64,000 bases of DNA. Origin: Macrostomum hystrix (Eukaryota; Animalia; Platyhelminthes). Below, piece by piece: positions 12,701 to 59,077 of the stretch. The translations under genes were made by a program, and so were the position numbers. The stretch covers positions 2,170,001 to 2,234,000 of the forward strand of contig CATNEN010000041.1 in the NCBI GenBank assembly GCA_950097015.1. Reading direction: 5' to 3'. Position 1 is the first letter of the stretch; each line of letters starts with the position of its first letter. Under the pieces are notes generated by a model. The model had not been told where the DNA came from. It saw nothing but the letters and a program-made list of their open reading frames with translations, and did not search any database.

Positions 12701-14903
12701 GCCACAGAGCATGCTGCATGTGACAATGGCACCTAATCAGGATTCAATAGGCCACAGAGCATGCTGCATGTGACAATGGCACCTAATCAGGATTCAATAG
12801 GCCACAGAGCATGCTGCATGTGACAATGGCACCTAATCAGGATTCAATAGGCCACAGAGCATGCTGCATGTGACAATGGCACCTAATCAGGATTCAATAG
12901 GCCACAGAGCATGCTGCATGTGACAATGGCACCTAATCAGGATTCAATAGGCCACAGAGCATGCTGCATTTGACAATGGCACCTAATCAGGATTCAATAG
13001 GCCACAGAGCATGCTGCATGTGACAATGGCACCTAATCAGGATTCAATAGGCCACAGAGCATGCTGCATGTGACAATGGCACCTAATCAGGATTCATTAG
13101 GCCACAGAGCATGCTGCATGTGACAATGGCACCTAATCAGGATTCAATAGGCCACAGAGCATGCTGCATGTGACAATGGCACCCAATCAGGATTCAATAG
13201 GCCACAGAGCATGCTGCATGTGACAATGGCACCTAATCAGGATTCAATAGGCCACAGAGCATGCTGCATGTGACAATGGCACCTAATCAGGATTCAATAG
13301 GCCAAAGAGCATGCTGCATGTGACAATGGCACCTAATCAGGATTCAATAGGCCACAGAGCATGCTGCATGTGACAATGGCACCTAATCAGGATTCAATAG
13401 GCCACAGAGCATGCTGCATGTGACAATGGCACCTAATCAGGATTCAATAGGCCACAGAGCATGCTGCATGTGACAATGGCACCTAATCAGGATTCAATAG
13501 GCCAAAGAGCATGCTGCATGTGACAATGGCACCTAATCAGGATTCAAAAGGCCACAGATCATGCTGCATGTGACAATGGCACCTAATCAGGATTCAATAG
13601 GCCAAAGAGCATGCTGCATGTGACAATGGCACCCAATCAGGATTCAATAGGCCACAGAGCATGCTGCATGTGACAATGGCACCTAATCAGGATTCAATAG
13701 GCCAAAGAGCATGCTGCATGTGACAATGGCACCTAATCAGGATTCAATAGGCCAAAGAGCATGCTGCATGTGACAATGGCACCTAATCAGGATTCAATAG
13801 GCCACAGAGCATGCTGCATGTGACAATGGCACCTAATCAGGATTCAATAGGCCACAGAGCATGCTGCATGTGACAATGGCACCTAATCAGGATTCAATAG
13901 GCCAAAGAGCATGCTGCATGTGACAATGGCACCTAATCAGGATTCAATAGGCCACAGAGCATGCTGCATGTGACAATGGCACCTAATCAGGATTCAATAG
14001 GCCACAGAGCATGCTGCATGTGACAATGGCACCTAATCAGGATTCAATAGGCCACAGAGCATGCTGCATGTGACAATGGCACCTAATCAGGATTCAATAG
14101 GCCACAGAGCATGCTGCATGTGACAATGGCACCTAATCAGGATTCAATAGGCCACAGAGCATGCTGCATGTGACAATGGCACCTAATCAGGATTCAATAG
14201 GCCACAGAGCATGCTGCATGTGACAATGGCACCTAATCAGGATTCAATAGGCCAAAGAGCATGCTGCATGTGACAATGGCACCTAATCAGGATTCAATAG
14301 GCCACAGAGCATGCTGCATGTGACAATGGCACCTAATCAGGATTCAATAGGCCACAGAGCATGCTGCATGTGACAATGGCACCTAATCAGGATTCAATAG
14401 GCCACAGAGCATGCTGCATGTGACAATGGCACCTAATCAGGATTCAATAGGCCACAGAGCATGCTGCATGTGACAATGGCACCTAATCAGGATTCAATAG
14501 GCCACAGAGCATGCTGCATGTGACAATGGCACCTAATCAGGATTCAATAGGCCACAGAGCATGCTGCATGTGACAATGGCACCTAATCAGGATTCAATAG
14601 GCCATCTCACCTGTCTGGATTCCCCAGCTTGCTGGACAGTTCACTCTTCAGCTTGTCATTCTCCACCTTCAGGTGCATGTTCTTCTGCTTTGTGATCTCT
14701 AGCCGGTCTTGCAGCTTGTTGACTGTGAAATCGAATTAGGAGGTGGTAAATAGACCTACACACTGAACTCCTGGAGTTAAGAGTATGCAAAGTATTGCTG
14801 GGTTATAGGTAGCTACAAACTCACAGGCAGTGATGACTGCAACAAACGAGTGCTCCCTGGCATTGCGCTGCCTCAGCTGCTGACTGATCACTTCTGCCCA
14901 CAT
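9739..14903 (-). CDS. ATG16L1: Autophagy protein ATG16-like (ATG5-binding helix, coiled coil, WD40 propeller), about 547 aa
   Basis: Minus-strand exons 14903-14825 (MWAEVISQQLRQRNARE), 14722-14611 (FNKLQDRL), 12428-11999 (coiled coil ENADLIQRWMEHK), 10977-10558 (ERVRRELEEAANEP; AHEGEVNGVRWSPSG), 10413-10129 (TGSHDRTLKLWDLR; SGHFDKKVRLYD) and 10056-9739 (stop). They sum to 1644 nt with consistent phases. Confidence 0.93.
11021..11971. repeat. Minisatellite, 27-bp unit, about 35 copies (ATG16L1 intron 3)
   Basis: Unit CTGAGGATCTGGCAGGGTGGTAGCCAC, almost invariant. Confidence 0.97.
12507..14604. repeat. Minisatellite, 50-bp unit, about 42 copies (ATG16L1 intron 2)
   Basis: Unit GATTCAATAGGCCACAGAGCATGCTGCATGTGACAATGGCACCTAATCAG, very homogeneous, begins a few bases inside the donor site. 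Confidence 0.97.
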
Positions 14904-18242: not shown

Positions 18243-21200
18243 ATGATTGGCGGTCTGTTCATTTACAACCACAAGGGCGAGGTGCTTATCTCCCGGGTCT
18301 ACCGTGATGACATCGGGCGCGAGGCGGTTGACGCCTTCCGCGTGAATGTGATCCACGCCAGGCAGCAGGTGCGGTCCCCAGTCAGCAGCATCGGCCGCAT
18401 AAGCTACTTCCACGTGAAGCGCGCCAACATCTGGCTGTGCGCGGTGGCCAAGAAGAATGTCAGCGCCTCGCTGGTGTTCCAGTTCCTCTATAAGATGATC
18501 GAGGTCATGATGTCATACTTTGGCAAGATCAACGAGGAGAACATCAAGAACAATTTTGTGCTCATCTACGAGCTGCTAGATGAGCTGCTGGACTACGGCT
18601 ATCCGCAGAACACGGACACCGGTGTGCTCAAGACCTACATCACCCAGCAGGGCATTAAGGCCCAGACCAAAGAGGAGACCACGAGAATCACCAACCAGGT
18701 ACAGCTGAAAGATGCCAATATGTCTGAGTGCCAGCAGTTTATAAAAGTAAAAATATTTGTACGAGCTAGGCGGGCAGTGGACCCTGGCACATCAGTTCGT
18801 GACGGTAAACCCGCAGCCAGCAAAGCGCAATTCTACCCTTTCCGCTGGCTCCTGAATACTTGCACGTCTATACCGTGCTTTTTAATTGTCAGGCAGCACA
18901 CATGTACTAAATTAATGTGACCTCGCGACGCATTCGAGCTCAGGATGCCTTAACCGCTGCTACTCAGCACCGGCTCCTCAAACCACCCGGCCTGCAGTTC
19001 ACCGGCCTCCTAAACCACCCGGCCTGCAGGTCACTGGCCCCCAAACCACCCGGCCTGCAGGTCACTGGCCCCCCAAACCACCAGGCCCCCAAACCACCAG
19101 GCCCCCCAAACCACCAGGCCCCCCAAACCACCAGGCCCCCCAAACCACCAGGCCCCCCAAACCACCAGGCCCCCCAAACCACCAGGCCTCCCAAACCACC
19201 AGGCCCCCCAAACCACCAGGCCCCCCAAACCACCAGGCCCCCCAAACCACCAGGCCCCCCAAACCACCAGGCCCCCCAAACCACCAGGCCCCCCAAACCA
19301 CCAGGCCCCCCAAACCACCAGGCCCCCCAAACCACCAGGCCTCCCAGACCACCAGGCCCCCCAAACCACCAGGCCCCCCAAACCACCAGGCCCCCCAAAC
19401 CACCAGGCCCCCCAAACCACCAGGCCCCCCAAACCACCAGGCCTCCCAAACCACCAGGCCTCCCAAACCACCAGGCCCCCCAAACCACCAGGCCTGCAGG
19501 TCACTGGCCCCCCAAACCACCAGGCCCCCAAACCACCAGGCCCCCCAAACCACCCGGCCCACAAACCGCCAGGCCCCCCAAACCACCAGGCCCCCAAACC
19601 ACCAGGCCCCCCAAACCACCAGGCCCACAAGCCACCCGGCCCACAAACCACCCGGCCCACAGGTCACCGGCCAGATCGCCTGGCGCCGCGAGGGCATTAA
19701 GTACCGACGCAACGAGCTCTTCTTGGACGTGATCGAGTCCGTCAACCTGCTGATGTCACCGCAGGGCCAGGTGCTGTCCGCTCACGTGTCCGGCCGGGTG
19801 CGCATGAAGTCTTACCTGTCCGGCATGCCCGAGTGCAAATTCGGCATCAACGACAAGGTCGTTCTGGAGAGCCGGCGCGGTGGCGGCGGCGCATCTGGCG
19901 AGGCCACAGGCGGCAAAGCCGGCCATATCGCCATCGACGACTGCCAGTTCCACCAGTGCGTGAAGCTGAGCAAGTTTGACACGGAGCACTCCATCTCGTT
20001 TATTCCCCCGGATGGCGAATTCGAACTCATGACCTACCGCACCACCAAGGACATCAGCCTGCCGTTCCGGGTGATCCCGCTAATGCGCGAGACTGGCCGA
20101 TCCGGCTTGGAGGTGAAGGTGGTGGTGAAGAGCAACTTCAAGCCCTCCCTGCTGGCGCAGAAGGTCGAGGTTCGAATCCCGACCCCGCTGAACACCAGCG
20201 GGGTGCAGGTGGTCTGTATGAAGGGCCGCGCCAGGTACAAGGCGGCCGACAACGCCATCGTTTGGAAGATAAAGAGGATGGGCGGCATGAAGGAGCTGCA
20301 GCTCAGCGCCGAGATCGACATGCTGAGCTCCACTGACAAGGCCAAGAAGTGGACCCGGCCTCCCATCTCCATGAACTTCGAGGTGAGTCTGATTGCTTTG
20401 TGTTTCCTCCTGCAACCCACCCATTGTCCCATCCTGCAACCCACCCATTATCCCATCCTGCAGCCCACCCATTATCCCATCCTGCAACCCACCCATTATC
20501 CCATCCTGCAAGCCACCCATTGTCCCATCCTGTAAACCACCCATTGTCCCATCCTGCAACCCACCCATTGTCCCATCCTGCAACCCACCCATTATCCCAT
20601 CCTGCAGCCCACCCATTATCCCATCCTGCAACCCACCCATTATCCCATCCTGCAAGCCACCCATTGTCCCATCCTGTAAACCACCCATTGTCCCATCCTG
20701 CAACCCACCCATTGTCCCATCCTGCAACCCACCCATTATCCCATCCTGCAACCCACCCATATCCCATTTTGCAGCCCACCCATTATCCCATCCTGCAGCC
20801 CAACCATTATCCCATCCTGCAACCCACCCATTATCCCGTCCTGTAAACCACCCATTATCCCATCCTGTAAACCACCCATTATCCCATCCTGCAAGCCACC
20901 CATTATCCCATCCTGCAGCCCACCCATTATCCCATCCTGCAAGCCACCCATTATCCCATCCGGCAACCCACCCATTATCCCATCCTGTAAACCACCCATT
21001 ATTCCATCCTGTAAACCACCCATTATCCCATCCTGTAAACCACCCATTATCCCATCCTGCAAGCCACCCATTATCCCATCCTGCAGCCCACCCATTATCC
21101 CATCCTGCAAACCACCCATTATCCCATCCTGCAGCCCACCCATTATCCCATCCTGCAACCCACCCATTATCCCATCCTGCAGCCCACCCATTATCCCATC

Positions 21201-21999
21201 CTGTAAACCACCCATTATCCCATCCTGTAAACCACCCATTATCCTATCCTGTAAACCACCCATTATCCCATCCTGCAGCCCACCCATTATCCCATCCTGC
21301 AACCCACCCATTATCCCATCCTGTAAACCACCCATTATCCCATCCTGTAAACCACCCATTATCCCATCCTGTAAACCACCGATTATCCTATCCTGTAAAC
21401 CACCCATTATCCCATCCTGTAAACCACCCATTATCCCATCCTGTAAACCACCCATTATCCCATCCTGCAACCCACCCATTATCCGATCCTGCAACCCACC
21501 CATTATCCCATCCTGCAACCCACCCATTATCCCATCCTGCAACCCACCCATTATCCCATCCTGTAAACCACCCATTATCCCATCCTGCAACCCACCCATT
21601 ATCCCATCCTGTAAACCACCCATTATCCCATCCTGTAAACCACCCATTATCCCATCCTGTAAACCACCCATTATCCTATCCTGTAAACCACCCATTATCC
21701 CATCCTGTAAACCACCCATTATCCCATCCTGTAAACCACCCATTATCCCATCCTGCAGCCGACCCATTATCCCATCCTGCAGCCCACCCATTATCCCATC
21801 CTGCAACCCACCCAGCCATCCAGCAGCCACCCAACTGTACTACTGTACCGCAAACATTCCGCAGGTGCCGTTCGCACCGTCCGGCTTCAAGGTGCGCTAC
21901 CTGAAGGTGTTTGAGTCCAAGCTGAACTACTCCGATCACGACGTCATCAAGTGGGTTCGGTACATAGGCAAAAGCGGTTTCTACGAGACTAGATGCTGA
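18243..21999 (+). CDS. AP2M1: AP-2 complex subunit mu, about 436 aa
   Basis: Exons 18243-18698 ([25 protein letters not shown]), 19663-20382 ([41 protein letters not shown]) and 21865-21999 ([37 protein letters not shown]). Total 1311 nt, both introns phase 0. Confidence 0.98.
18978..19662. repeat. Minisatellite, about 17-bp unit, about 40 copies (AP2M1 intron 1)
   Basis: Unit AAACCACCAGGCCCCCC with variants. Confidence 0.93.
20409..21815. repeat. Minisatellite, 24-bp unit, about 58 copies (AP2M1 intron 2)
   Basis: Unit ATCCTGCAACCCACCCATTATCCC with GTAAA/GCAGC variants. Confidence 0.96.
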
Positions 22000-22557
22000 G
22001 AGCTGGCCTACTGTATGCTGCCGGTCTCACAGACAGCTGCAGATAATCTATTCTGTTTTACTCAATCGTTTTTCAATTACTGTCGCAAATCTGCTGCAGT
22101 TTTTATTTTCGAGTTTCTTTTTTTATCTTCATCTATTCTGGCAGAGTATTTTCAGTGTTTTTAGTCTTTGTTGTCAAGTCTTTGTTGGCGATCGCAGCCG
22201 CCCAGATGTGCTATAAATTGGATTGCCTTTTCAATACCATTGGCCGCATGTTCACATGTCTTTTTTTTGCGCTTTTCTTTACCCAGGTCGCTCCCTTTGT
22301 TTTCTCTTTTGGTTCTCGGCTTCCAGCAGCTTTTTGCTTGAGTTTCGGATTCACACTAGAGCAATGGCGATGGATGCTAGTGCGGTCTGAGCCGCAAAAT
22401 TTTATTCTGCACATCTGCTGTTTATACTACTGTTAGTATCTTACTCTAACAAATTCTCTGCTGAATAATCTATTGTATGAGGTGGGCAAAACTCCCTGTT
22501 TGCATGCGCGTTCGACCTAGGACCTGGTCATTGTCAGCTGTTCATCAACCCACCCGT

Positions 22558-23325
22558 TTAGCTGACCGCTCCCCAATCCTTCAGCTGACCGCTCCCCCAA
22601 CCCTTCAGCTGACCGCTCCCCAATCCTTCAGCTGACCGCTCCCCCAACCCTTCAGCTGACCGCTCCCCCCAACCCTTCAGCTGACCGCTTCCCAACCCTT
22701 CAGCTGACCGCTCCCCAATCCTTCAGCTGACCGCTCCCCCAACCCTTCAGCTGACCGCTCCCCAATCCTTCAGCTGACCGCTCCCCCAACCCTTCAGCTG
22801 ACCGCTCCCCCCAACCCTTCAGCTGACCGCTTCCCAACCCTTCAGCTGACCGCTCCCCAATCCTTCAGCTGACCGCTCCCCAATCCTTCAGCTGACCGCT
22901 CCCCAATCCTTCAGCTGACCGCTCCCCAATCCTTCAGCTGACCGCTCCCCAATCCTTCAGCTGACCGCTCCCCCAACCCTTCAGCAGACCGCTCCCCAAT
23001 CCTTCAGCTGACCGCTCCCCAATCCTTCAGCTGACCGCTCCCCAATCCTTCAGCTGACCGCTCCCCAACCCTTCAGCTGACCGCTCCCCAATCCTTCAGC
23101 TGACCGCTCCCCAACCCTTCAGCTGACCGCTCCCCAATCCTTCAGCTGACCGCTCCCCAATCCTTCAGCTGACCGCTCCCCCAACCCTTCAGCAGACCGC
23201 TCCCCAATCCTTCAGCTGACCGCTCCCCAATCCTTCAGCTGACCGCTCCCCCAACCCTTCAGCTGACCGCTCCCCAGCCCTTCAGCTGACCGCTCCCCAG
23301 CCCTTCAGCTGACCGCTTCCCAGCC
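22558..23325. repeat. Minisatellite, 23-25-bp unit, about 32 copies
   Basis: Unit TTCAGCTGACCGCTCCCCAATCC. Confidence 0.95.
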
Positions 23326-23553
23326 CTTGCAAGCCGATCGCGCCTGACAAATCATTGAATCCCAGCTCGGTGCAATCTCACTTTATTGCTAACATATTAA
23401 AATATTAATTGAAGCTTTAAGGTATTAAATACACCTGACTAATCTATTCGTACAGTTTGTTGCCGTTTTTTGCTGCCTGTGTTTGTTCGCACGCCACTGT
23501 CTTCCCGCGCTGTCTCCCTGTGTATTTTTGCATGCCGCTAATAAATGCTTTAG

Positions 23554-26912: not shown

Positions 26913-29900
26913 TGTATGACCAGGAATAGAATTTGCTTACCTTCTGGATACTTTTTTCCTCCATGTCTTGCAAGCCCTCATGGAGGTTCCTGAACAGACG
27001 ATCCCACAACTAGTTTTCTCTCCGTTTTTACAATATTTTTTTTGCCGAGCTATTGACAGACCTGACTTATACTTCAGACCGACGCAAAAAGGTAGCCCCA
27101 TGCCGCTGGACGATACCGGCAGCGGCAGCGGCAGCGATGGGCAGGACAATGAGCTCGGAGGCCCATATCGGCGGAAGCGTCCACTGCCAGCCAGTGCGAG
27201 GCCCCAAAGCCTGCCAGCCTTCATGCGCGAGCGTGCAGTGCCGAACGCCACGGTCACCAGCCTCATGACAGGCCAGCTGGGCAACCTTCCAGAGAGAAAC
27301 TCGCGGACGGTGCGGATTTTCATCAGCTCCACTTTCTCAGGTCCGTTGAGGAGCCTAAAAGAATCGATTGATTTTAAATGGTTAAATTGGTTTCTTGCAC
27401 GAAATCCGACATTGTCCCTTAACCCTGGCCTGACAATTCTGTTCTAATATTTCTTATCGGTTTCTACTTAAAGGCAAGATCTGACAGTTTGTGATAAATA
27501 AGGCTACTAAAAAGAAAGAGCTGGCTACTTTTCTTTGAACTAGGAAGAGCGGAAATGATGGACATGCTGTCCTACCAGGATTGCCCATGCCAGCTGCGAT
27601 GGTGTAAGAACCTTTAGCCCTGGTTCTTGATGGCTGCAGCCGCTCTGCATTGTTACGAAATCTAGAAACGGACGTAGGGTTCTTGGTGGAATGAATGCAT
27701 GAATCTTTGATGGTTCAACTCACGAGCTGAACATCGGGTTGGGACAGAAGCGCAACGCCACACTTATTTGAAATGAAATTATACCCATCATACCAAGACG
27801 TCTGTAAACCGAGATTTTCCTTCTATTTCCCTGGCCTCATCTATATGCAGACATGCACCTAGAGCGAAACGTTCTGATGCAACACGTCTACCCAAGGCTA
27901 AAGCACATGTGCATGATCCGGTATGGATTGGCCTTTCACGTGAGTCTAAACTATTCGGACTGAACTATTCAAAGCTATTCTAAACTATTCAAAATTTCAC
28001 TCAACCACAAAACAAACTCAGTCGTGCTTGGCTAAATTTTCAGTTGGTGGACCTGCGCTGGGGAATTCAGGAAGGGGCCTCGATGGACCAGAAGGCTAGT
28101 GAGATTTGCATGCAGGAAATTGCCCATTGCCAGAGCACTTCTGTCGGCCCACACTTCCTGGTAATCACTGATACAAGCACAAAAATTATGATACCTCAAA
28201 TAAAATGAGTAATTAGCGGCAAAACCAACACAATATTACAGGCTATTTTAAGTCATAGGTACGGAACAAAAACACTTCCATACGCTGTGGCAAAGTCTGT
28301 CATGGAAGCCCTACTGAGCATCATGGAGGGCCGCGGCATGGATGATGCTAGACAGCTCATCGAGAAGTGGTACCACTTAGACGAGAACCAGTTTGATCCA
28401 GTCTACGTGCTTCAACCAATACTTCAGAAATGGTCGGTAACAACGACTGTAAAGCTGGCGCTAGCTGCGTGGCAAAACGATGAGGCGGCACTGCTGCGAG
28501 CGTTGCAAGCCTGTGCTGTGGCCGCGAAGGAAGCCGGAACATTTGGCGAGGACACAGCTGTTCAATTCACGACGTCCGTAACACACCAAGAAGTGCTGAA
28601 TGGCGTGCAGAAGTCAACGTTTGCAAGACGACAGGATGCTCTGCTTTTTCACCGCGACCTCACGGATGTGCTTGACTACGTTCAGATGAAGGAGCCAGGG
28701 GTCCGGAGGTTAATCGACATTAAGGACGATGGTGAGATTGACGATAATGCGAAGCTTCTGCTGGATACCTTGAAAGAGCAGAAGCTACCAAATCTACTGC
28801 CCACTGAAAACAATCTACTGCCCAATGAGCCAGGTGAGGAGATACATCGAGAGTGAAGCCAGACACCCGCTCATGATTCACGGAGCCTCCGGCTGTGGAA
28901 AGACGTCGGTGATGGCTCGAGCTGCAAATCTCGCTCGACAATGGCTTCCCGAATCCGACAGAGAAGGCGCGATCGTGATCATCCGATTCCTCGGAACGAG
29001 TCCGTCGTCATCCAGCATCCGTCAGACACTGCGCTCGATCTGTCAACAAATGGCTGTTGTCTTAGGGACATCAGAAGTGACTGACAGCATTCAGGAAATC
29101 GATTTCAGAGAGATTGTGAACAACTTTTACAAGCTGGCAGAGAAGCTCTGTCAACAATCTCGAAAGGTGTTAATCTTCCTCGACTCGGTTGACCAGCTTG
29201 ATGCTTCAGACGGTGCTCACACACTGGGCTGGCTGAGACCCAACTTGCCGACTGGAATAAAGATTGTGCTCAGCTCACTTCCCGACATGTTCGACATTCT
29301 CGACTCGTGTCGCAGTCTTCTTCGAGACATTGACTCAAGCGAATGCTTTGTGGAGATTTGTGAGCTCAATCCGGAGCTGTGCTGTCACATTGTGAGAGAC
29401 ATGCTGACTGAGAGAGGTCGGTGTCTCACTGAGCCTCAGTGGTGTGTGTTGCGAGCTGCATTCGAAAAGTGCAGTCTCCCGATCTACATGAATCTCGTGT
29501 TCAACCAGGTGATGGCATGGAACTCGTACACTCCAGTAGACTCTCACTCACTCGAGTACACAGTCCGAGGCGCGATCGAGCACCTGTTCAATCGTCTTGA
29601 GCGTCAGCACGGTCAGCTGCTCGTGTCTCACGCTCTCGCCTACATTACCGCATCGAGGAGTGGTCTCGGAGAAGGAGAGATCGAGGACTTGCTATCGTTG
29701 GATGAGGAGGTTCTCGGAGAGGTGTTTGCGCACCACCTTCCGCCATTCATCCGTCTTCCGCCATTGTGTTGGACTCGCGTTCGTCACGAGATCGGACCAT
29801 ACTTGGTAGAGCGCGAAGCAGACGAGGCTCGAGTGTTGACGTGGTACCATAGACAGTTCTGGGAGGTGTGCCGCGATCGCTACTTCTCTAACGCAGAGTT

Positions 29901-32900
29901 CATGAGGCAGATGCACTCACGACTCGCGGACTACTTTCTTGGAGTATGGTCCGATCGACCGAAGCCGTTCAAGTGTCCACCGAATCTGGCAGCAAAGCTG
30001 GCGAGACAGGTGAGTAACAAACGATCGTTAATGTGTCTGCAATGTTTATGAACTATTATTTTCTGACGTATACAAGTACAAATTTGTCTTCAGGGCACCC
30101 CTCCTCCGAGCGAAGCTGACAGACAGGTCCCTCAACAGCCTCATGTTCTTCAGCGAGACGACAGCGGATCAGTGCGCTTCAATCTAAGGAAGTTGAGCGA
30201 GCTGCCGTTCCACCTGCTCCGTAGCGGTCGCATTGATGACTTTCTTGATCACGTGACGTTCAACATGGACTTTCTCGAGTCAAAGCTGAGTGCCACATCT
30301 CACCACTTGCTGCTGCGAGACCTCCAGTTGTTCTTCGATGTGGACGAGTCGGTCCGGGGTAGCGGATCCGACTCAGTAGACGCCGAGAGACTGTTCAATG
30401 CGATGAGGATCGCTGGACCGAGTCTGAGTCACAGTCCGTTGTGTCTTCCGGTGGACCTTTGCGGCCGGCTGAGATCATTCGCAGAGAGCTCGTCTCGGAT
30501 TCGCAAGCTTCTGTCGGACTGCAGACATCGAGATCAGTCGACTTGCATATTGCCTCTGAACGGATGCTTTGACAGCGGCAGCAGCTACACGCACTGCAGC
30601 ATTCAGGGTCAAATGAGCCTTGGTAGGCTATGTGAAAACGGTCAATTCTTTACAGTTTCCTCAGCGGATAACATTGTGACCTGGTTTGATGCGCAGGGCA
30701 AAATGATCAAAACCGTCACCTGTGACTATTTTCCAGCTGTTCACGTAGGCTTGTTTTCGGTACTGCCTAAGAGTGGCAGTTTCTTGACTATTGAAGATCC
30801 TCAAATTGCAAGTACGTATAAAATTTTCCAAGCGAATTTTTTCAGTGGAGTTTGGCATCCGATAATTTCAAACGTCGCTTCTTTTGTATCCGACAGTTAC
30901 TTTGGTGAAACTTATAATTTAGTCGCTTCAAGTGAAAGCCACATCATTCTCAGGAGTAGGATGCGGTCGGCAAACAGATTTTTTTACGTTTGTCTGAAAC
31001 CAGAGCCCCAAATGTTGGGGTACTTTAGCACTAATAAAGAATTTGTGCCTCGTCTAAGTGAAGATTGTTTTGTCTTCTTTGTTGGATCTGCTGTTTCAAA
31101 CGAAGAGCGTGACTTAACCAATGATTCCGTGGTACTGAAACCTCACGTTCTACTTCTTAATGATTTCACCGATGTGTGCCTTCAATGTGCGGAGTTTGAG
31201 TCCGGAGAGCTTCTTAACTACAAAGCATTCGTTGAAGGCTCCGACATTCTGTTTGTAACGACCAGCAAACACGAGCTTGAAAGTACGGTCACATTCACAG
31301 TGCGTCGATTCATTGTGGACGAAAAATCAGTTCGAGAAGACATTTGTTGTCAGGTGCAGTCAGCACATGACCCTGGCAGCATGTTCGATGTCACCCTGTC
31401 GCTGGATCGCACGACCGCCGCCATCTGCTTCACCTGTTTGAAGGAAAGCATGGGGTTCTTGTGCAAGCTGCCGCAGTGCACTTTTACACCGCTGGCCTAT
31501 CACACAGTGTTGCAGAGCTCTTTGCTGAACATTGATAGCTTTGAAAATTATGTTCCTAACTCAAAAAATATTCACATCAGCCATGATGGTCGATTTCTGC
31601 TGTGTAAAACGAAGTGTCAATACATGTTCAACATCTGGTCCGCTCATGACGGCTCGTTTCTGACTGCCATTCCTTATTCGGAAGCATTCTATTGTCTTGG
31701 CCAGATGGCCGGAACTGACTTCTTTCTGATTAACTCAATCCCAAGCAACATTGTTAGTGGTTCGGTCTCACTGACAAAGGTTCTCAAGCTAAGCTTGCTG
31801 ACCGCATATAACATGAGCTCTGATCGCGAGCGAATCAAGTCTCAGCAGCTAGCTGACGCAGTGCTTCACATTGACACCGAAGCTGGTCGTTTTGTATGGG
31901 CGTTTTTTGATCCTCAGTCTGGTGGGTGCGCCTGGCAGCTGGACTTGCGTTCGGCAGCAAAATCAACCATTCTTCTTCACCAACTGGAAAATGCGTCTCA
32001 CGCGAAGTTCCTGAACAAACCAGAAAGCTTAAACAGGATTTCAGACTCAGAAGTCACTGAGGAAAAACCTGAACGAACTCAGAAGTCTGAATTTGTTCAA
32101 TCGCTTATTGAAGTGTTGAAGGACCGGATTGTCCACCGGGATCTTCAAGAGCTTAATATTTTGCTGATTCAAGAGCCAGGGAGTCTTGAACTTTTATTGA
32201 CCGATGTAGGCGATGTCGCTAACTTTGCGTTGAAAAACCGAAGCTCTAATTTTGGGTGTCGCTTCAAAGCCACAAGGCAGTCGACTGATATGAAATTGAG
32301 AATCGATGCACAACATGAAGATCAGCTGACTCACGATCTTCTTAGTCAAATAGAAAACAAGGAACTCGCTATACTGGTTTCAAATCACGCAACACTGAAG
32401 TCATTTCCTATTTCCTATTTGATCCCAGGTAGAACATTAAATATATTCTCTCACAGCAGCAAACTTTCAGGTGTTCTGAGCAAAAGTAAAATTGAAATTT
32501 ATCTGCTGGTAAAATCTGAAAATGCAACAGGTGTTGACTCCAGCCTGCATTCAGTCAGTCAATCATTTAGTGATCCAAGCACAGAATCTTTCCTGTGTAC
32601 GCTCGGTCTTCAAGATCGGTCCATAAAGCGAAGCTTGCATTTGCCAGTCTTGCACCTGGGAAGTCCTTTTATGAAGTATTGCGGCAGGAGAGTCGCCCTG
32701 AACACTCTAAAGCAAGCAGTCTTCAATTTTGTGACAATTTTTGGCAAAAGTGATATGTATATACCTGACGGAGGTCAAAGTATTCAACAGAAAAAGATCA
32801 TCGACTTCACAAAGATGATTTTCCAGCATTCCTTAGACTTCATTCGCATGAAAATCACCGAGTTTTCAAACACAGAAGACATGGACTATTCAAGTAATAC

Positions 32901-33949
32901 TGAACGAATGCAGCAAGAGCTGATGGCTTATCTAAAAAGCTCTCTCAGCGCGAACTCTCAGCAGCAGTCAGGTATTTTCCCTGGAATGCCACTGCTTCAG
33001 CAGCAAAGCATCGACACTCTCATCACGATGATATTCACGACCAATGAAACCAGCTACCTAAGCTTAAATTACAAACTGAAGTTGAGCGCCACCGACCGCT
33101 GCACTCCAACATTGGTATTCGAGCGCCCACTTCACCCTCATCACATGGTGGTGCTGTACCTGTGTGAGTCCGTCTCGAGCTACTCGGATGCGCTCGATCG
33201 TGAGCGAATGTGCTGGCCGGGTCGGCTGGTCGTGTGCGACACGAGCACAATGCAGGTGATGTCCGTGAGCAGCACCTTCGATGCAGGCGCTCTGTACCTG
33301 CTTCCGGACGGAGTTCACTGCATCACGTACCGGTTGAAGGTGTTCAACATTGAGACGGGTGATCTGGTTCGTGATCTAGATCTCGAGGACTCCGTCATCC
33401 TCATCGACATGGTGGCCACTCCGGACCGTCGGCTGGTCATTGGACTGAGATACGAGGTCTTCGAAGCGACGAAAATGATCATTGACTACATGCGAGCAGG
33501 TGGTAGGCTGAAGTCAGCGGAGGCTCAAGAGTTCTGCAGTGAAACTGCTATCAGCAATTCAAAAACGATTCAGGTGAAAATCGCTTTTTGGATCATTTTA
33601 GTTCAGTGCAGAAATTTTGTTCAAACACTTTGTTATTTAAATCGCTTACCTTGTAACAGGCCTACAGCACATGTGACGGCTCGTTGTTGTTTAATTATCG
33701 TTTCGAGGCCGAGCCTATTGCCTTGCTGGTACCTGCCAACGATCGTCTGTTACTGCTCGTGAAGGATCACCCAGTTCAGCTTTATGAGATCCTTTCAGAT
33801 GGCCTTGATTTAAAAGAAAATTGGCCCCATAAGTCTCGGGCAAGCAAAGAGTTTCCTCAGGAACCAGAGTGCTTGGAGCTGATTACGGCTAATCTGAGGA
33901 CGGATTACATGGCCTACCTGAGTAAGTTTTACTTTTGACCCACAAATTC

Positions 33950-34400
33950 TGCCTTTCGTCAATATTTACACTCTTTCCCTTGTTTTCGCCCTTGCCACCC
34001 CGTCCCGTGGCAGAGTTCGTTAGGCCCTCCCGTTTGGCCCCACCCGTCCAATCCGGTTCTCAGGCCCGGTTTGTGCTCGCTAAGCCGGGGCTTTCTGATT
34101 GGTTGATTTTCTCGTTCGCCCTCACCCTTCCGCGGCTCTGCGCTTTAGGCCTAACCCCACCCCCATCCGGTGGCTGACACAAACCTGTTCTGCGTTGCAG
34201 GGTCAGTGCCTAATTGGTCTGTCTTGCCCCACCTTTCTCTCTCTGCCCCATTTTAGGCGTCACCCTGCCCCATCGCCCACCCTCCCTGTCTCGGGCTTTG
34301 CGAGTATTTAACGCGCACCGTAAACCCCCCCACGCGAGTGCCGGTCTCTTCGCACTGTGGCCATTGGGTTAGCTTAAGAAAAGAGGGTTGTAAATACAAA
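33950..34400 (-). mobile_element. LTR-like dispersed repeat in intron 6 of copy A (related to 55150-55460 in opposite orientation)
   Basis: The reverse complement GACCAATTAGGCACTGACCCTGCAACGCAGAACAGGTTTGTGTCAGCCACCGGATGGGGTGGGGTTAGGCCTAAAGC aligns by eye to GACCAATCAGGTGCCGACCCGGCCACGCAGAACCGGTTTGTGTCGGTCACCGGATTGGGGCTGGGGTTCGGGCTAAAGC at about 55270. Ends and class are not defined. Confidence 0.55.
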
Positions 34401-34694
34401 CTGACCAAACAAACAAATACGTTCGTACAACAAGAAGTGAAAGTCAGCAGCAATCGTACAAACCAGCGAATGAGTAGAGCAGCCTTCGATCCCTCGCGGT
34501 AAGACTGACGATTCCGACTTGATCATTTGAACGTCCCCTGCTCAACATTCCCGAAAAAGATCTGGCAACGGAATAAAAAAATCAAGCACAGTTTTCATGT
34601 GGGATCGATGCTAATCCACTGCAAGTTTTAGAGTAGAGTAGATCGAAATTTCTCAAATGAGCTACTCCGAAAAATTCCTGCAACCATACCGCAG

Positions 34695-34813
34695 GGAAGG
34701 TGCTGGCACGTGGTCTGGCCCGGGTTGCCGACGTCCGACCATCAGATCCGATTGAGTACCTGGCCAGGTGGCTGTTGCAGTTCGTGGCTCATCGCGATGG
34801 ACCTGGGCATTGA
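34695..34813 (+). other. Terminal exon of copy A encoding a Dpy-30/RIIa-like motif
   Basis: Acceptor CCGCAG at 34689-34694, phase 1 matching the donor at 33921. Translates [39 protein letters not shown]-stop. Not in the ORF track. Confidence 0.8.
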
Positions 34814-35677: not shown

Positions 35678-38600
35678 ATGCAGCCTGCGTCAGCGCAGGG
35701 CAGCAACCCGCAACAGCAAAACGATGCCAACGACGTCACCGGTGGAACCCACAGAGAGGACTCCACCAAACCAAAAGGAGCACCAATGAGACCGCGACTG
35801 AGCAATCGGAGAACCCAGAATCTGCCGGCGTTTCTGCAGGGAGCGGTGCAACGTGCCGAGGCCCTCCAGGTCCCTCTCATGGCCGGTGAGATGAGCAACT
35901 TACCTGAGCGTAACTCCAGGACTGTTCGCGTCTTTATCAGCTCGACCTTCTCCGGTTTGATTTTTTCTCCGTTGCAAAATTTCTAACCAAATTTCAACTA
36001 GAAGAGTATAAATTTTTGCAAGCAAGCTTTTAAAACACACTGCAGACATGCATGTTGAACGAAACGTACTCATGCGGTACGTGTACCCGGAACTGAAGGA
36101 GTCGTGCCTGCTGAAGTATGGCCTGGCATTTCAGGTTGGATCGAGTTGTTGTCTATAAATCTGAATAAGCAAATTTTCCAATTACACTTAAAATAAAACA
36201 AATTCTAACCAGAGTTTGATTAGTTGAATAAAACTGCTGTCAGGCTGACAGAATCAGAAGTCTGGCAAATTACTCTTGTGAAAAAATATGGCCTAGGAAA
36301 ATTCCTGATACTCGTAATTTAGTCTAATTAGTCTATTGTTTGTCAAACCTAAATAAAAAAGTGCTAATTTGCTTCCTTACATGTATAACAATAGTAGCAA
36401 TAATATTTGCAGGAGGACTGTGGTGACTGGCACATAATTTGTTGACAGTCGACCATCAGCCAGCGACCTTGGTGAATTCCGCACACACGCACACAGATAT
36501 TGTACACAGGCACTCACTCGCTAAGGGGTGTACATCTGCATTGACTTTCTCATCGTCAGTCAGGTGTGCACTGTCACATGCCTTGGAGGTTGGCCCTCAA
36601 GGGCGTAAATTGCACGAAGCCGCCAAGCCTTCTATCCACGGCTGCGCCCCAAATGAATATGGCCTCGCCGCGGAATCGAGCTCAGGGACCTCGCCACGAG
36701 AGACAAACGCTCTGCCACTCACCCTCTTCCTAACATCATTAGCCTTGCACTGGGACAGTTGCTTGCCAACGGCCTCGAAAATTCCTTCCATCGCGTTCTT
36801 GCAGATCGTAGACATGCGCTGGGGAATTCAAGACGGGGCCTCGCTGGACCAGATGGCATCCGAGATTTGCTTCCGCGAAATTCAGCTGTGCCAGGAAACG
36901 TCTGTGGGACCGCACTTCCTGGTAAACAGCGATTTTCACTGTGATTTTTCTCCCGAGGATGCCCTCTGGCGCTCAAAACAATTCTTAGAAATATCCTTCA
37001 AATTCTACTTAGGTGATCTCGTATCTGAACTTATCCGATGAGTAGCTTAGCTTACAACGTGCTTAGTAACCTGAAAAAACATCTTGGTGCCCGCAGGCCC
37101 TTCTGGGGCATCGCTACGGTACAAAGAAATTACCATATACCGTTGAAAAGACTGTCCTGGACAACCTTATGCAGCAGATGAGCGACACTGCTGCACTTGA
37201 ACTAACAGAGAAATGGTATCGCAAAGATGATAACCAGCTTGAACCTGTGTATGTGCTGCAGCCAGTGCTTTTAAGTCCCGCGTCCGGCAAAGCAGCTACT
37301 TTCACTTGGGAGAAAGAAGAGAAGATGCTGCTCAACATTTTGGAAAATGCGTCTCGAGAAGCCGTCAAGTCTGGTAAAATTGACGAGGCAGAAGCGCTAG
37401 TATTTTGCTCATCGGTGACTGACCAAGAGGTGACGAAAGGAATAATAACATGCAAAGCCGACAGACGTCCGGACACGCTGCTGTGCATCAGGGAACTGAC
37501 TGACGTGCGCGACTTATTAAAGAGCGAAGTAGCTGATGTTTCCAGGTTTATTGAGACAACGATCGATGGGCAAGTTAACGAAAGCACTGTCCAAAGACTC
37601 GAAGAAATAAAAAGCTGTCTAAAGTCAGGCGCTATCCCATGCGAAAATATTATGGAGTACAAAACTACATATGGATCAGTAGCTGACACTGAAAGTATGA
37701 CAAGAACTGAATATGAAACAAAACTTGCAGCAGACCTGAAGCTCCAATTGCAAATACTGATTGACAGAGCAATCGAGAGAATCTCTGAGCTAGAGTCCGA
37801 CAGTCTGTACTCCGAGGTGTTGCAGCACTCGCACCAGTGTGTCAGCTCTGTCCGTCAGTTCCAAGGACGAGAAGACACAATGAGCCAGGTGAGGAGATAC
37901 ATCGAGAGTGAAGCCAGACACCCGCTCATGATTCACGGAGCCTCCGGCTGTGGAAAGACGTCGGTGATGGCTCGAGCTGCAAATCTCGCTCGACAATGGC
38001 TTCCCGAATCCGACAGAGAAGGCGCGATCGTGATCATCCGATTCCTCGGAACGAGTCCGTCGTCATCCAGCATCCGTCAGACACTGCGCTCGATCTGTCA
38101 ACAAATGGCTGTTGTCTTAGGGACATCAGAAGTGACTGACAGCATTCAGGAAATCGATTTCAGAGAGATTGTGAACAACTTTTACAAGCTGGCAGAGAAG
38201 CTCTGTCAACAATCTCGAAAGGTGTTAATCTTCCTCGACTCGGTTGACCAGCTTGATGCTTCAGACGGTGCTCACACACTGGGCTGGCTGAGACCCAACT
38301 TGCCGACTGGAATAAAGATTGTGCTCAGCTCACTTCCCGACATGTTCGACATTCTCGACTCGTGTCGCAGTCTTCTTCGAGACATTGACTCAAGCGAATG
38401 CTTTGTCGAGATTTGTGAGCTCAATCCGGAGCTGTGCTGTCACATTGTGAGAGACATGCTGACTGAGAGAGGTCGGTGTCTCACTGAGCCTCAGTGGTGT
38501 GTGTTGCGAGCTGCATTCGAAAAGTGCAGTCTCCCGATCTACATGAATCTCGTGTTCAACCAGGTGATGGCATGGAACTCGTACACTCCAGTAGACTCTC

Positions 38601-41600
38601 ACTCACTCGAGTACACAGTCCGAGGCGCGATCGAGCACCTGTTCAATCGTCTTGAGCGTCAGCACGGTCAGCTGCTCGTGTCTCACGCTCTCGCCTACAT
38701 TACCGCATCGAGGAGTGGTCTCGGAGAAGGAGAGATCGAGGACTTGCTATCGTTGGATGAGGAGGTTCTCGGAGAGGTGTTTGCGCACCACCTTCCGCCA
38801 TTCATCCGTCTTCCGCCATTGTGTTGGACTCGCGTTCGTCACGAGATCGGACCATACTTGGTAGAGCGCGAAGCAGACGAGGCTCGAGTGTTGACGTGGT
38901 ACCATAGACAGTTCTGGGAGGTGTGCCGCGATCGCTACTTCTCTAACGCAGAGTTCATGAGGCAGATGCACTCACGACTCGCGGACTACTTTCTTGGAGT
39001 ATGGTCCGATCGACCGAAGCCGTTCAAGTGTCCACCGAATCTGGCAGCAAAGCTGGCGAGACAGGTGAGTAACAAACGATCGTTAATGTGTCTGCAATGT
39101 TTATGAACTATTATTTTCTGACGTATACAAGTACAAATTTGTCTTCAGGGCACCCCTCCTCCGAGCGAAGCTGACAGACAGGTCCCTCAACAGCCTCATG
39201 TTCTTCAGCGAGACGACAGCGGATCAGTGCGCTTCAATCTAAGGAAGTTGAGCGAGCTGCCGTTCCACCTGCTCCGTAGCGGTCGCATTGATGACTTTCA
39301 TGATCACGTGACGTTCAACATGGACTTTCTCGAGTCAAAGCTGAGTGCCACATCTCACCACTTGCTGCTGCGAGACCTCCAGTTGTTCTTCGATGTGGAC
39401 GAGTCGGTCCGGGGTAGCGGATCCGACTCAGTAGACGCCGAGAGACTGTTCAATGCGATGAGGATCGCTGGACCGAGTCTGAGTCACAGTCCGTTGTGTC
39501 TTCCGGTGGACCTTTGCGGCCGGCTGAGATCATTCGCAGAGAGCTCGTCTCGGATTCGCAAGCTTCTGTCGGACTGCAGACATCGAGATCAGTCGACTTG
39601 CATATTGCCTCTGAACGGATGCTTTGACAGCGGCAGCAGCTACACGCACTGCGCAATTCAGAACCACTTGAGTGTGTCAAAGTTGTGCGAAAACAACAAG
39701 TTTTACACCATTGGGATTTCCGGTCTCAACGTCACGTGGTATGACCAAGACGGCGTCGTATGGAAGAGCGTGACCTGCGACAGGCTTCCCGTCTTGCATA
39801 TTGGATTGATGCCAGTTCTTTCCTCTAATGGTTGCTTTTTGACTGTTGACAAGGACATTACACAACAACATTTCAAGCTTTACAGAGGCAATCTGCTGAC
39901 AGGTGTATGGAAGTGTGTTCTTGATTTCATGCCGTCTGAAATTCCAGAGAACTTCTATAATTATCACGACCCTGTGCTTGCTGCTTGGGAGAATCACATT
40001 GTTCTACGCAGAGACAACTTTGATAAGATAGAGCAAGGCCTTTGCATCGTATTAAAACCATCGTTACCTACGAAAAGTGTTTGGCTCGTTGCGACGAAAA
40101 CTTCTCCACCGTTGCTGAGCAAGGATTTGTTTTTGTTTTATGTCGGATCACTCGTGCCGCCTTCATGGACTAGCGGCGACTCGTTTCAGCCTTCCTTTAG
40201 GCCCCGCGCGCTTGTTCTTGAAAACTTTCAAGAGGTAAATCTTCCCTCTTCAGAGTTTGATTCCGGGCTTTTAATTAACTTTAAGGCATTTGTTCGTGAC
40301 AATGATATTCTGCTTGTCACATCCAGCAAAGTGAGCCTTGAAAGCACAGCCATCGTCTTTACGATTCGTCGATTTGTCGTGGATGCTGCAAATGTTGTGG
40401 AGGACGTTTGCTCACAGGTCGAGTCTGAGCACGATCCAGGTGACAACTACAACGTCACAATGTCTCTCGATCGCATGACCATTGCAATATGTTTCACCTG
40501 CGTGAGAGAGAGCATGGGCTTTTTATTGAAGCTGCCCCACAGAGCATTCGTGCCTCTGGCTTTTCAACCGATTTTGCGGAAGTCAGTCGGCGTTGTGCTG
40601 TCCAAGTTCTCGAAGGTGCAGGCAAGCACTTTCCAGTTGTTCTTGAGTCACAATGGCGAATATCTGCTTTCGAAGACGCGAAGCCACTTCATGTTCAACA
40701 TTTGGTCTGGTCGTGACGGCTCGTTTCTGGCCGCGATCCCATTCTCGAGCCGCTTCTACTGTCTGGGCCAGATTCCCGGCACAGACCTGTTTCTGATCAA
40801 CACGATTCCTGTTAGCATTGCCAACTCCGCGTGCAATACGATCGTTGTGAATCTCAACAAGCTCGCCACAAGCTCGGCAATGCAAGGCAGCATAGTGACG
40901 GCCGAATGGTGCGTAGGCGGCACTTTCTCGTTCAGTCCTCATGAAAACAGTCTGGTGTCGTTCTACTTCGACAGACATCTTGGCGGCTCCGCTGCAGAAA
41001 TGAGCCTTGAATCAGGTGCCATGCAGGACATTCTGAAGCTGCCGCTTGAACTCTCAGACCCCACTGCTGAAGCGATTGATCAGATCGAAGCGAGATTTTC
41101 TCGCGAAATCAGCATGAAGCTGAAGAGTCGCAGTCTGCACCCTGACATTCGGGAGTTTGGTCTGGAGCTCTTCCAGGCACCGGGCAGCCTTCAAATGCGC
41201 ATCGCGGATGCCGAGACCGTCTTGAATGGAGGATTTGACGGAACTGACAAGAGCTTGACGAATGCAGTTTTCAATGTGAAGCATTTCTCAGGAGAGTATA
41301 AAGTGAATGACGTGACCGTTTCGGGGTCAGACATCTCTGATTTCATAAGCAAATTTTTGAACGAGAGAGGACTGAATTTCGTCATATCTAACCACAGAGC
41401 TCTGGATGCATTTCCTCTCAGCTACTTGATGGCGTCAGAACTGCCTCACGCGTTCAGCCGAACTTCAGTGCTGCCAGCCGTGCTCAGCACCGATGAGCGA
41501 AGGCTGCATCTTCTGCTGGTTGGGAATGCGAAGCCGCCAGCTCGGAGACCGGTCGACAGTGAACTGGCTGAAGTCGCAGCCCCAAAAGAGAGTGCAAACT

Positions 41601-43874
41601 CCGTTCCGAGCAGTTCCGAATCAGAGCAGTCTCGACTGCCAGAAGAGGAAGTTGGTGCCTATGGCAAGATCTGGGGCAGGGATTGCTCGCTTCTGTGCAG
41701 CGTGGATGTCGCGAATCGAGAGATGGACAAGTGCCTGAGTCTGCCAGTTTTGGAAGTCGGAGATGCCTTTATAAAGTTTGCAGGAAGACAGGTGGCCGTA
41801 GAGACTGTTAGAAAATCTGCTGAGAACTTTTTGCTGCTGCTTACGAATGCTTCATTCATGTGGACTAACTCTGATGGTGCAAGTCAACAGGAATTTGGTA
41901 TTTTTATTGCGCGCCATATATTCCAGCACATCCTTCATTTCATTCGACGCAAGCTCCAGGAATTCATGGCTGGAGCTCACGCAGACATTGACTTTTCGAC
42001 AAACGGCGAATTCTTGGCCCGTGAAATGAAAGCGTCTGTTAGCGATTATCTTCTTAAAACACCAGAAATTCTTGGAAAAATGATTCCGATCCAGCTGATC
42101 TCTCTGATTGACATGGATGAAATTGTAGAAAGAATGCTGTTTGCGGATCCAAGGATGAGCTTTCTGTCAATGAAGTATAACATCAAATTGAGCTCCACCG
42201 ACCGCTGCAGTCCAGCAATGATCCTCCAGCGCCCACTTCACCCTCATCACATGGTGGTGCTGTACCTGTGTGAGTCCGTCTCGAGCTACTCGGATGCGCT
42301 CGATCGTGAGCGAATGTGCTGGCCGGGTCGGCTGGTCGTGTGCGACACGAGCACAATGCAGGTGATGTCCGTGAGCAGCACCTTCGATGCAGGCGCTCTG
42401 TACCTGCTTCCGGACGGAGTTCACTGCATCACGTACCGGTTGAAGGTGTTCAACATTGAGACGGGTGATCTGGTTCGTGAACTAGATCCCGAGGACTCCG
42501 TTGTCCTCATCGACATGGTGGCCACTCCGGACCGTCGGCTGGTCATCGGCAAGCAACTGGAGATGCTTCGCGACCTGGAAACAATGGGTGACATTGCCAA
42601 GATTGCAAGCAATAATGACGAGAACAATCCGGATAGAGACAATTTTCTGTCGAGTCAGTCTACGCGGGGCTCAAGAGTAATTCAGGTAAGCTTGGTGTGT
42701 TGAAATTATGTTGCCTTACTTTTCTCATATACGGAAAGTTTCTCATTTTCTTGTACATTCGGGTTCTAGAAAACTTTTGATTTTGGCGAGATAAGTCCTT
42801 TCGCGAAATTCAATGATCGTAAAAGATATTTCTGAATTTCTGAATGCATCTAAGGCGACCATTGTACATTGAATGTCCACTAATATGTTTAGTTGGACTG
42901 TCAGCAAATTTATATATCTGGAATAAACTCAGAAAAATCATCTTCATTACAGGCCTACAACTCATTGGATGGCACTCTTGTTTTTAATTATCGCTTTGAG
43001 TTCGATCCGCTCGCCTTACTAGTACCGTCAAATGGGCGTTTGGTGATTCTGCTCAGGGACCATCCCATTCAGCTTTTCGAGATTGTTGATCCAACAGAGC
43101 GCTCTTCGGCTGAGGCAATCGAATCTGCCTTGCTGCGCATTGATTCGAAGAATGCCAATGCTGTGCTTGTGTCGGAAATTCTTAAGTCTGATTACCTGAA
43201 TTTTCTCAGTGAGTACCCCACACGGATCTTGTCTACGCATATTCTCTAGTATAGCTTGTAGAAGGCGCTATATAACAATTGGCCTGGCCTGCACAGTCAC
43301 AGTATTAGGGCTCAGCCAATGATGTTTGGGACTGGAGGGAACGCTTGTAGCTTGCGTCAGCTTGAGCGTCAATTGTGACCCAGGAGGGCCAGCCTCCAGG
43401 TCGCATTGGAGATGCGCGTCTGATGATGCGAAAGTTAGGACAGCCCTGAGAACACCTCTGTATGAGCGGATTCCGCAATTATCTTTCCTTGTTTGGGACA
43501 GGAAGCCACTTGTTCCGCGTGCTAATCTGGATTATTACTCAGTGTGTACCAAATTTTAACACCAATCGAGGGCGTCAATACGTGAACAATAGGGCGCTCG
43601 TAATTATAATTAGGGTTCCATATGTTACGGGTTGATTCTCAATAGCTTTCAGTCCTGATCGACTGAGCCATTAGAACTAGCATTGACGCTCTGCAAGTTA
43701 AATCACGGCATCCGCAGAGTGGATTATCGACGAATCAACTTAATTCCACTTGCAGAGTCGGTGCTGACCCAGGGACTGGCGCGCGTTGCCGAGTCGCGTC
43801 CACCAGACCCTATCGAATTCCTCGCTCGTTGGCTGCTACAGTTCGCAGCAGCTCAGTCCGCTGGACTGAATTAG
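35678..43874 (+). CDS. NWD1/NWD2-like STAND protein, copy B, intact, about 2120 aa (DUF4062-like, NACHT, propeller, Dpy-30 motif)
   Basis: Exons 35678-35954, 36046-36134, 36805-36921, 37097-39064, 39149-42685, 42953-43208 and 43756-43874. They sum to 6363 nt, all GT-AG with matching phases and no internal stop. Exon 2 and 3 sizes (89 and 117 nt) match copies A and C. Confidence 0.9.
36608..36726 (+). repeat. About 130-bp dispersed repeat, copy 2
   Basis: Aligns by eye with 26785-26912 in the same orientation. Confidence 0.65.
43756..43874 (+). other. Terminal exon of copy B encoding a Dpy-30/RIIa-like motif
   Basis: Acceptor TTGCAG at 43750-43755, phase 1. Translates [39 protein letters not shown]-stop. 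Confidence 0.82.
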
Positions 43875-58746: not shown

Positions 58747-59077
58747 GGGAATAGGAGTAAGCAGATGATGCGCAGTTTAGCAAAACTACAGTTAGATTAG
58801 CAAATTCAAGAATTGAATAAGCAATCAAAACCAACAAAGTGTTTGATGAAAAATCAGCACTTTATCGTGATTATCAGTAGTGCAAGCTCGAATTAATGAA
58901 TTTGTTTATCTTCAAACTGAACAAAACTGGCACAGGTGAGATAATTGGCATTCATATTTCAATGACGGGACACTTCTGCGGTTTTTATAAACTGATCATT
59001 TGAAAATGCTGCAGCCACTCAGCACTTTGAAAAGCATGCTCCACCTTGCAGCAGCTGACAGCTTGACGATGCTCCGG

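Follow-up and report, generated by a model that had tools for sequence, protein, structure and literature searches.

A stretch of 64,000 nucleotides from the flatworm Macrostomum hystrix (the window; assembly GCA_950097015.1, contig CATNEN010000041.1, positions 2,170,001 to 2,234,000 of the forward strand) carries three tandem genes, here termed A, B and C, that encode proteins with a NACHT nucleoside triphosphatase (NTPase). They are paralogues on the same (+) strand, spaced by 9055 nt and 10817 nt. We consider it very probable that they are old duplicates between which interlocus gene conversion has occurred repeatedly. Ectopic conversion or segmental exchange, as opposed to selection at the protein level, had been proposed in a preliminary description of this DNA. 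The low synonymous divergence of a shared core, an intron identical in all copies, pairings that switch along the genes and a threefold read depth over the core all uphold that proposal.

A nearly identical core in divergent genes

The core spans the nucleotide-binding and oligomerization (NOD) module of each protein (Table 1). It had been described as collinear, with about seven differences judged by eye. A MAFFT alignment and a position-by-position comparison find no indels and exactly seven variable sites in 1774 nt, corresponding to identities of 99.6-99.9% (two differences between A and B, five between B and C, seven between A and C). Two sites are private to A (29352 and 30245), five to C (29497, 29889, 29912, 30108 and 30457) and none to B; four of the seven change the encoded residue, three are silent and the intron has none. 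The flanking coding regions, said earlier to be barely alignable, are 30-65% identical in 100-nt windows, and the abrupt end points are also as reported, with identity to B ceasing at 30597, after the residues YTHC, and A and C remaining alike to 30641, at LCENG. The three-way tract starts approximately 22 codons ahead of the NTPase as delimited by Pfam and ends at a predicted helix-to-strand transition. Self-BLAST within the window, and a search extended to all 220 Mb of the assembly, reveal three copies of the core only, the next paralogues being 66-67% identical over this region.

Synonymous substitutions per site (dS), estimated by the Nei-Gojobori method over 563 core codons, amount to 0.0026 for A and B, 0.0052 for B and C and 0.0078 for A and C. 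In the unique parts of exon 2, the exon that follows the core intron, the proportion of synonymous differences is about 0.78, beyond correction, fourfold degenerate sites are 27-37% identical and the amino acids 30-49% identical. Silent sites are thus saturated, which places the duplication of A, B and C long ago. A sliding-window calculation, the check suggested in the preliminary description, shows that dS is not uniform along the genes, at 0.003-0.008 in the core and saturated in the flanks. The longest identical runs are 892, 529 and 677 nt compared to a maximum of 44-75 nt under column permutation, where none of 2000 replicates reaches the observed values. A genome search found no closer relative of any A, B or C flank, and import of the flanks from other paralogues is thereby ruled out.

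The intron within the core is, as claimed, the same in all three copies at 84 of 84 positions. Other paralogues possess an intron at this position, of 73-90 nt with GT..AG ends, and its similarity to that of A, B and C is no better than that of shuffled sequence. The same holds between two further family members, L004 and L005, despite exons that are 86% identical. Since the intron drifts freely elsewhere in the family, its identity here cannot come from constraint. Its location inside the tract means that exchange was templated by genomic DNA, and cDNA-templated conversion is excluded.

A mosaic of further tracts

The tracts were mapped from identity and dS in sliding windows and from exact lists of mismatches, and the core proves to be one of several (Table 1). 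Counting the sites that support each pair, positions 28489-28811 give 151 for A with C against one for each of the other pairings, and positions 31053-31497 give 163 against one and one. The core itself has five for A with B, two for B with C and none for A with C. Support is confined to A with C at 30598-30641 (20 sites) and to A with B at 33122-33374 (eight sites). In the unique parts it is mixed, with A and C somewhat closer; these two are the more similar pair, and tracts occur between them elsewhere also. Phylogenetic support is therefore incongruent between adjacent segments, switching among the three pairings. The change of partners, combined with the differing ages of the tracts, indicates several separate exchange events. 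The divergence of A from C, 4 in 323 nt in the left tract as opposed to 7 in 1774 nt in the core, is merely suggestive with respect to relative age. The C-terminal module, which holds the older three-way tract, also matches distant paralogues at 76-79%.

Copy number, boundaries and transcription in sequencing reads

Read depth over the core, which had been named as a safeguard against consensus collapse, is about three times that of the unique parts. The unitigs of a DNA run have mean k-mer depths of approximately 68-86 in A-unique sequence, 134-135 in two A=C tracts and 253-268 in the core, and this ratio of about 1:2:3 agrees with the assembled copy numbers. Unitig ends at 28506/28518, 28812/28823, 30597, 30641, 31048-31053, 31394 and 33111 coincide with the mosaic boundaries. 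Of the loose ends, that at 28812 reads into a C-type continuation and that at 28823 into a B/C-type continuation. Paralogue-specific letters at 29352, 29889, 29912, 30108 and 30245, together with those in the 33079-33443 tract, are present in the contigs.

Contigs from two runs that behave as RNA, one from a 2023 study and one from a 2020 study, skip exactly the 84 nt at 30010-30093 with GT..AG borders, and one RNA contig covers 2590 nt that lead out of the core and through A-unique sequence to 31496. The intron is therefore real and gene A is transcribed. Further introns of gene A set by RNA contigs are 27341-27850, 27940-28043, 28161-28241 and 33571-33656. The depth ratio and the splicing of the core intron in RNA contigs of two studies rule out collapse or polishing; the identity of the cores is no artefact of that kind.

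Several runs carry variants of their own. An RNA contig of run X4, from the 2020 study, has the C letters at five of the seven variable sites and those of A/B at 29497 and 30457; this reflects either a chimeric contig or a population with other paralogue-specific variants. Run X9, which bears a third organism label, contains A-unique sensor sequence (32628-33240) with one difference in 617 nt, and a core piece (28823-29027) with a B/C-type upstream end that has two differences in 205 nt, matching none of the three copies. The core may have been homogenized separately in X9, although the sample is small. RNA run X2, from the same study as X1, bears another organism label and agrees with gene A at about 99.8%. 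Its label could denote a line, a sibling taxon or a labelling inconsistency.

Frame disruptions upstream of NACHT

Gene B has canonical splice sites and a single frame from the DUF4062 exons through NACHT. Judged from this assembly A and C are both frame-disrupted, a point that goes beyond the preliminary description. The 13-nt filler at the deletion junction of A is a direct copy of 28791-28803. Through a net loss of 218 nt the DUF4062/linker frame meets a stop at 28856, with the NACHT frame restarting at an ATG at 28825, exactly where the identity of A with B and C starts. In C the extra base, which stands next to two substitutions, falls within the A=C tract some 24 nt from its left end; the frame is reopened by an ATG at 48133. 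Downstream, both genes maintain open frames of more than 1500 codons through unique sequence, so the disruptions are either young or tolerated. End joining typically leaves a deletion accompanied by a short templated insert, and the position of that in A suggests that it may have arisen during break repair linked to conversion.

Table 1. Positions of genes, shared tracts and other features in the window.
Feature	Position	Strand	Remarks
Core, copy A	28824-30597	+	NACHT P-loop NTPase, NWD1-like winged helix and helical region, the whole NOD module
Core, copy B	37879-39652	+	2 sites differ from A, 5 from C
Core, copy C	48696-50469	+	5 private sites
Core intron	30010-30093 (B 39065-39148, C 49882-49965)	+	84 nt, phase 0, GT..AG, spliced in RNA contigs
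A=C tract, linker exon	28465-28811 (C 48118-48465)	+	4 substitutions in 323 nt and a 1-nt indel; B about 50% identical
B=C left extension of core	37790-37878 (C 48607-48695)	+	89 nt; stretch missing in A
A=C right extension of core	30598-30641 (C 50470-50513)	+	20 sites for A=C versus B, 0 against
A=C tract, sensor region	31053-31497 (C 50925-51369)	+	3 differences in 445 nt; 163 sites for A=C versus B
Older three-way tract	33079-33443 (B 42185-42549, C 52897-53261)	+	93-96% identity; conserved C-terminal module
A=B patch nested in three-way tract	33122-33374	+	253 nt, 100% identical
Gene A deletion junction	28812-28824	+	13-nt filler in place of 231 nt found in C (48466-48696) and B; assembly only
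Gene C +1 frameshift	48139-48142	+	one base extra relative to A and the conserved protein frame; assembly only
Gene A	27223-34798	+	exons 27223-27340, 27851-27939, 28044-28160, 28242-30009, 30094-33570, 33657 onward, Dpy-30 exon near 34700-34798; frame disrupted at 28812; transcribed
Gene B	35837-43847	+	exons to 35954, 36046-36134, 36805-36921, 37097-39064, 39149-42700 onward, Dpy-30 exon near 43725-43847; sole copy with intact frame from DUF4062 to NACHT
Gene C	47011-55648	+	exons 47011-47128, 47507-47595, 47688-47804, 47895-49881 (frameshift near 48140), 49966-53409 onward, Dpy-30 exon near 55493-55648
Minisatellite arrays	578-2000, 12359-14550, 20281-21700, 22549-23328, 45262-46348, 56273-57063, 57698-58749, 59311-60034, 60416-61193, 62326-63776		

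Domain organization and family

The order of parts in A, B and C is a probable DUF4062, NACHT, an NWD1-type winged helix, a helical region, a probable β-propeller and a Dpy-30 motif, and the products are STAND (signal transduction ATPases with numerous domains) proteins. All protein and domain searches were carried out exon by exon with single exons as queries. In Pfam the first core exon of all three copies matches NACHT (PF05729, E values 2e-10 to 6e-10) and the NWD1-type winged helix HTH_NWD1 (PF25469, 9e-20 to 2e-19). The short N-terminal exons searched singly against Pfam gave no match, and the locus is not among the five matches of a genome-wide scan with PF13271. However, exons a-d are collinear, at 54-73% identity, with the stretch of full-length M. 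lignano homologues scoring over threshold for PF13271, and the small upstream exons of A and B show the same collinearity with the DUF4062 part. No leucine-rich repeat (LRR) family was matched by any A, B or C exon in Pfam and the genes are therefore not of the canonical NACHT-LRR type.

Among database proteins the best matches come from Macrostomum lignano and are 1800-2035 residues long; their Pfam content is DUF4062, NACHT, HTH_NWD1, approximately 1100 residues devoid of matches and Dpy-30. Identity to them is 60-65% in the core, 29-42% in the sensor and 57-65% in the C-terminal module. The Dpy-30 terminal exons of the three genes match the Dpy-30 motif of these homologues (PF05186 in two cases), a docking motif that is unusual at the C-terminus of a STAND protein.

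The sensor region encoded by exon 2 (1150-1220 residues) is probably a β-propeller. A Pfam search with exon 2 gave no match, WD40 included, and querying the Protein Data Bank by sequence with exon 1 of B and a profile of the three exon-2 products returned none either. The language-model neighbours of the region are WD40 clusters. An AlphaFold2 model of exon-2 residues 1-560, from a six-row alignment, has a mean predicted local distance difference test score of 49.8, a low confidence that limits its use to the trend in secondary structure and the class of Foldseek matches. The model has helices to about residue 175 and is all-β beyond about 178; Foldseek matched propellers only, with low TM-scores. 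The assignment to a propeller, resting as it does on such predictions, is a lead and no demonstration.

What might the N-terminal domain do? According to a recent study DUF4062 adopts a TIR-like (Toll/interleukin-1 receptor) NADase fold, active in human TEP1 and not in purified NWD1, NWD2 or NPHP3 (bioRxiv 10.64898/2026.05.01.722283). By analogy this suggests that the family may carry an immune-type effector.

The genome holds at least 25 loci with an NWD1-type winged helix. L004 and L005 (C1:26.242-26.245 Mb, minus strand, and C1:26.527-26.531 Mb, plus strand) form an inverted pair about 285 kb apart. They share 86% identity over NACHT and 93% in the upstream part, and represent a younger duplicate pair that has no tract above 99%. 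Pairwise identical hidden Markov model scores are found at further family loci (C13:57945 and C31:3474282; C6:70411 and C24:7006735; C34:7009128 and 7036025). Equal-scoring loci are positioned on different contigs or as inverted pairs and could reflect recent duplication, haplotypes left uncollapsed or additional partners in conversion.

The window as a whole is unusually rich in long minisatellite arrays (Table 1), with periods of 29, 50 and 24 nt among others and many copies at 90-100% identity. Some arrays show a strong GC skew and one is located between genes B and C.

Interpretation

Repeated conversion would have proceeded as follows. After the ancient duplications A, B and C would have exchanged sequence repeatedly, non-reciprocally and with DNA as the template. 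The newest and largest tract, of approximately 1.8 kb, comprises the whole NOD module with its intron and has come to occupy all three genes. Other tracts would have passed between A and C only or B and C only, and an older tract in the C-terminal module would have received a fresh A=B patch. Tracts may persist where the family is most conserved, as homology there would permit initiation and purifying selection would tolerate the outcome; in the diversified sensor conversion might be rare, or its products removed. At the junction in A, the repair of a break may have combined copying of a paralogue's NOD at one end with end joining at the other. Homology-dependent initiation with a selective filter fits the pattern, and selection for uniformity is not needed. 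That the core tract has its limits near domain borders fits such a filter too, this being a single case.

Several observations weigh against repeated conversion or limit what can be drawn from it. The direction and order of events are not given by the seven core sites, which are too few for that purpose. The only relatives found in another Macrostomum are M. lignano proteins at 29-65% identity, and no orthologous cluster of a sister species, in which cores could be seen to group by species, was found. The read support consists of de Bruijn contigs, which can be chimeric within an identical core, not long spanning reads, and the DNA run may derive from the sample used for the assembly itself. 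The junction in A and the +1 in C are not seen among the contigs listed, which are the longest ones, and are features of the assembly alone. Finally, the enrichment in GC at third codon positions (0.61-0.74 in tracts versus 0.42-0.55 in unique parts) is not specific, as the same region of other paralogues is equally high (0.52-0.75 for the NACHT of non-converting ones); GC-biased conversion is thus not shown.

Is the uniformity of the NOD module itself under selection? The preliminary description put forward the idea that one module is kept so that A, B and C can co-assemble as mixed oligomers. The three-way tract covers the entire oligomerization module and stops where the probable sensor begins, long open frames are kept downstream in A and C, and the same idea has been advanced for the zebrafish NLR groups (PMC4852459). 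Against this, some tracts lie beyond the module and some join A and C only, four of the seven young differences are non-synonymous, and a neutral model of homology dependence and selective filtering explains the pattern. In addition A and C have, in this assembly, a broken frame between effector domain and NACHT, and this sits less easily with three subunits that cooperate. We regard adaptive homogenization as unlikely.

The disruptions admit a different functional reading, in which B is the sole complete receptor gene and A and C, uncoupled from the effector, are kept interchangeable with B by conversion. They might then serve as a germline reservoir of alternative sensor cassettes, or encode effector-less NOD-sensor proteins, starting at ATG 28825 and ATG 48133, that use the identical NOD to assemble with B and act as sensors, decoys or regulators. 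If so, the break repair behind the exchange would have left the frame-breaking scars at tract edges as a side effect. This is quite an unlikely proposition.

Reciprocal exchange, through unequal or double crossovers, or the placing of a young NOD cassette into three older genes, would account for sharp tract ends near domain borders, including a helix-to-strand transition predicted near exon-2 residue 175, and for a deletion in A exactly at a tract end. Yet each tract has old sequence of the same gene on both sides, the number and order of genes are unchanged, and the tracts are nested and differ in age and partner, where single crossovers would yield chimeras and a change in copy number. Such replacement is very unlikely, with the proviso that the outcomes of reciprocal exchange and of conversion are hardly separable.

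Might the true cores differ, having been made alike by the assembler or polisher? Near-identical repeats of 1.8 kb situated 9-11 kb apart are the classic place for consensus errors, and the best DNA run may share the sample of the assembly. Nevertheless depths of about threefold in the core and twofold in A=C tracts match the copy numbers, unitigs break at the tract ends, variants specific to paralogues at the seven core sites and in 33079-33443 occur in reads with private differences kept, and RNA contigs of the separate 2020 study carry the same core sequence, so that an artefact is barely credible. Extreme constraint at the nucleotide level, from an overlapping RNA or antisense gene, has nothing specific in its favour and can be dismissed, given other paralogues only 66-67% and M. 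lignano proteins 60-65% identical over the same region, an intron free to vary elsewhere in the family and pair-specific tracts that it leaves unexplained.

Significance and comparison with known systems

Repeated conversion among A, B and C provides a base-resolved, read-supported example of concerted evolution restricted to domains in an NLR-like (nucleotide-binding, leucine-rich repeat) gene cluster. Fish and plants are known to combine a homogenized NOD with a diverse sensor, and this division arises also in a DUF4062-NACHT family. Three genes with sharp tract ends constitute a small system in which to ask whether an identical NOD allows mixed oligomers, and the possible end-joining scar at one edge makes the cluster suited to the question of how a conversion tract is initiated and terminated. 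Annotation of these genes calls for masking of the tracts, as trees and age estimates will otherwise be misleading.

A literature search returned no report of NACHT genes, or of conversion among them, in Macrostomum or any other flatworm. Conversion in clusters of receptor genes is already familiar from fish, plants and fungi; the flatworm lineage is new. Plant NLR clusters, such as the type I RGC2 genes of lettuce, contain tandem receptor paralogues that are mosaics of exchanged tracts. Exchange in plants often shuffles the LRR sensor and the nucleotide-binding part is NB-ARC, whereas the largest flatworm tract homogenizes the NTPase module, and that module is NACHT. In fungi the NACHT-WD paralogues of the NWD family, HET-E and HET-D among them, exchange sequence between loci and their WD repeats evolve in concert. 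There the exchange of repeat units creates diversity, in contrast to the flatworm genes where it is mainly the NOD module that is exchanged.

In architecture the closest parallel is with human NWD1, NWD2, TEP1 and NPHP3, which place DUF4062, a TIR-like domain, before NACHT, followed by an APAF-1-like helical domain and a propeller (bioRxiv 10.64898/2026.05.01.722283), the order that is probable for A, B and C. These genes are single-copy in mammals, whereas A, B and C form a cluster, have a sensor that lacks a Pfam WD40 match and end in Dpy-30.

In mode of evolution the parallel is with the zebrafish NLR-B30.2 genes, in which conversion homogenizes NACHT within groups, with a B30.2 sensor that remains diverse (Howe et al. 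2016, Open Biol; PMC4852459); the authors speculate that NACHT uniformity serves group-specific multimerization (PMC4852459). In both systems conversion acts differently on NACHT and on the recognition part of clustered genes. The zebrafish case concerns hundreds of genes of FISNA-NACHT-LRR-B30.2 type and was deduced from distributions of dS (PMC4852459). That of the flatworm involves three genes, probably of DUF4062-NACHT-propeller type, with tracts mapped to the base, an intron within a tract and partners that are frame-disrupted.

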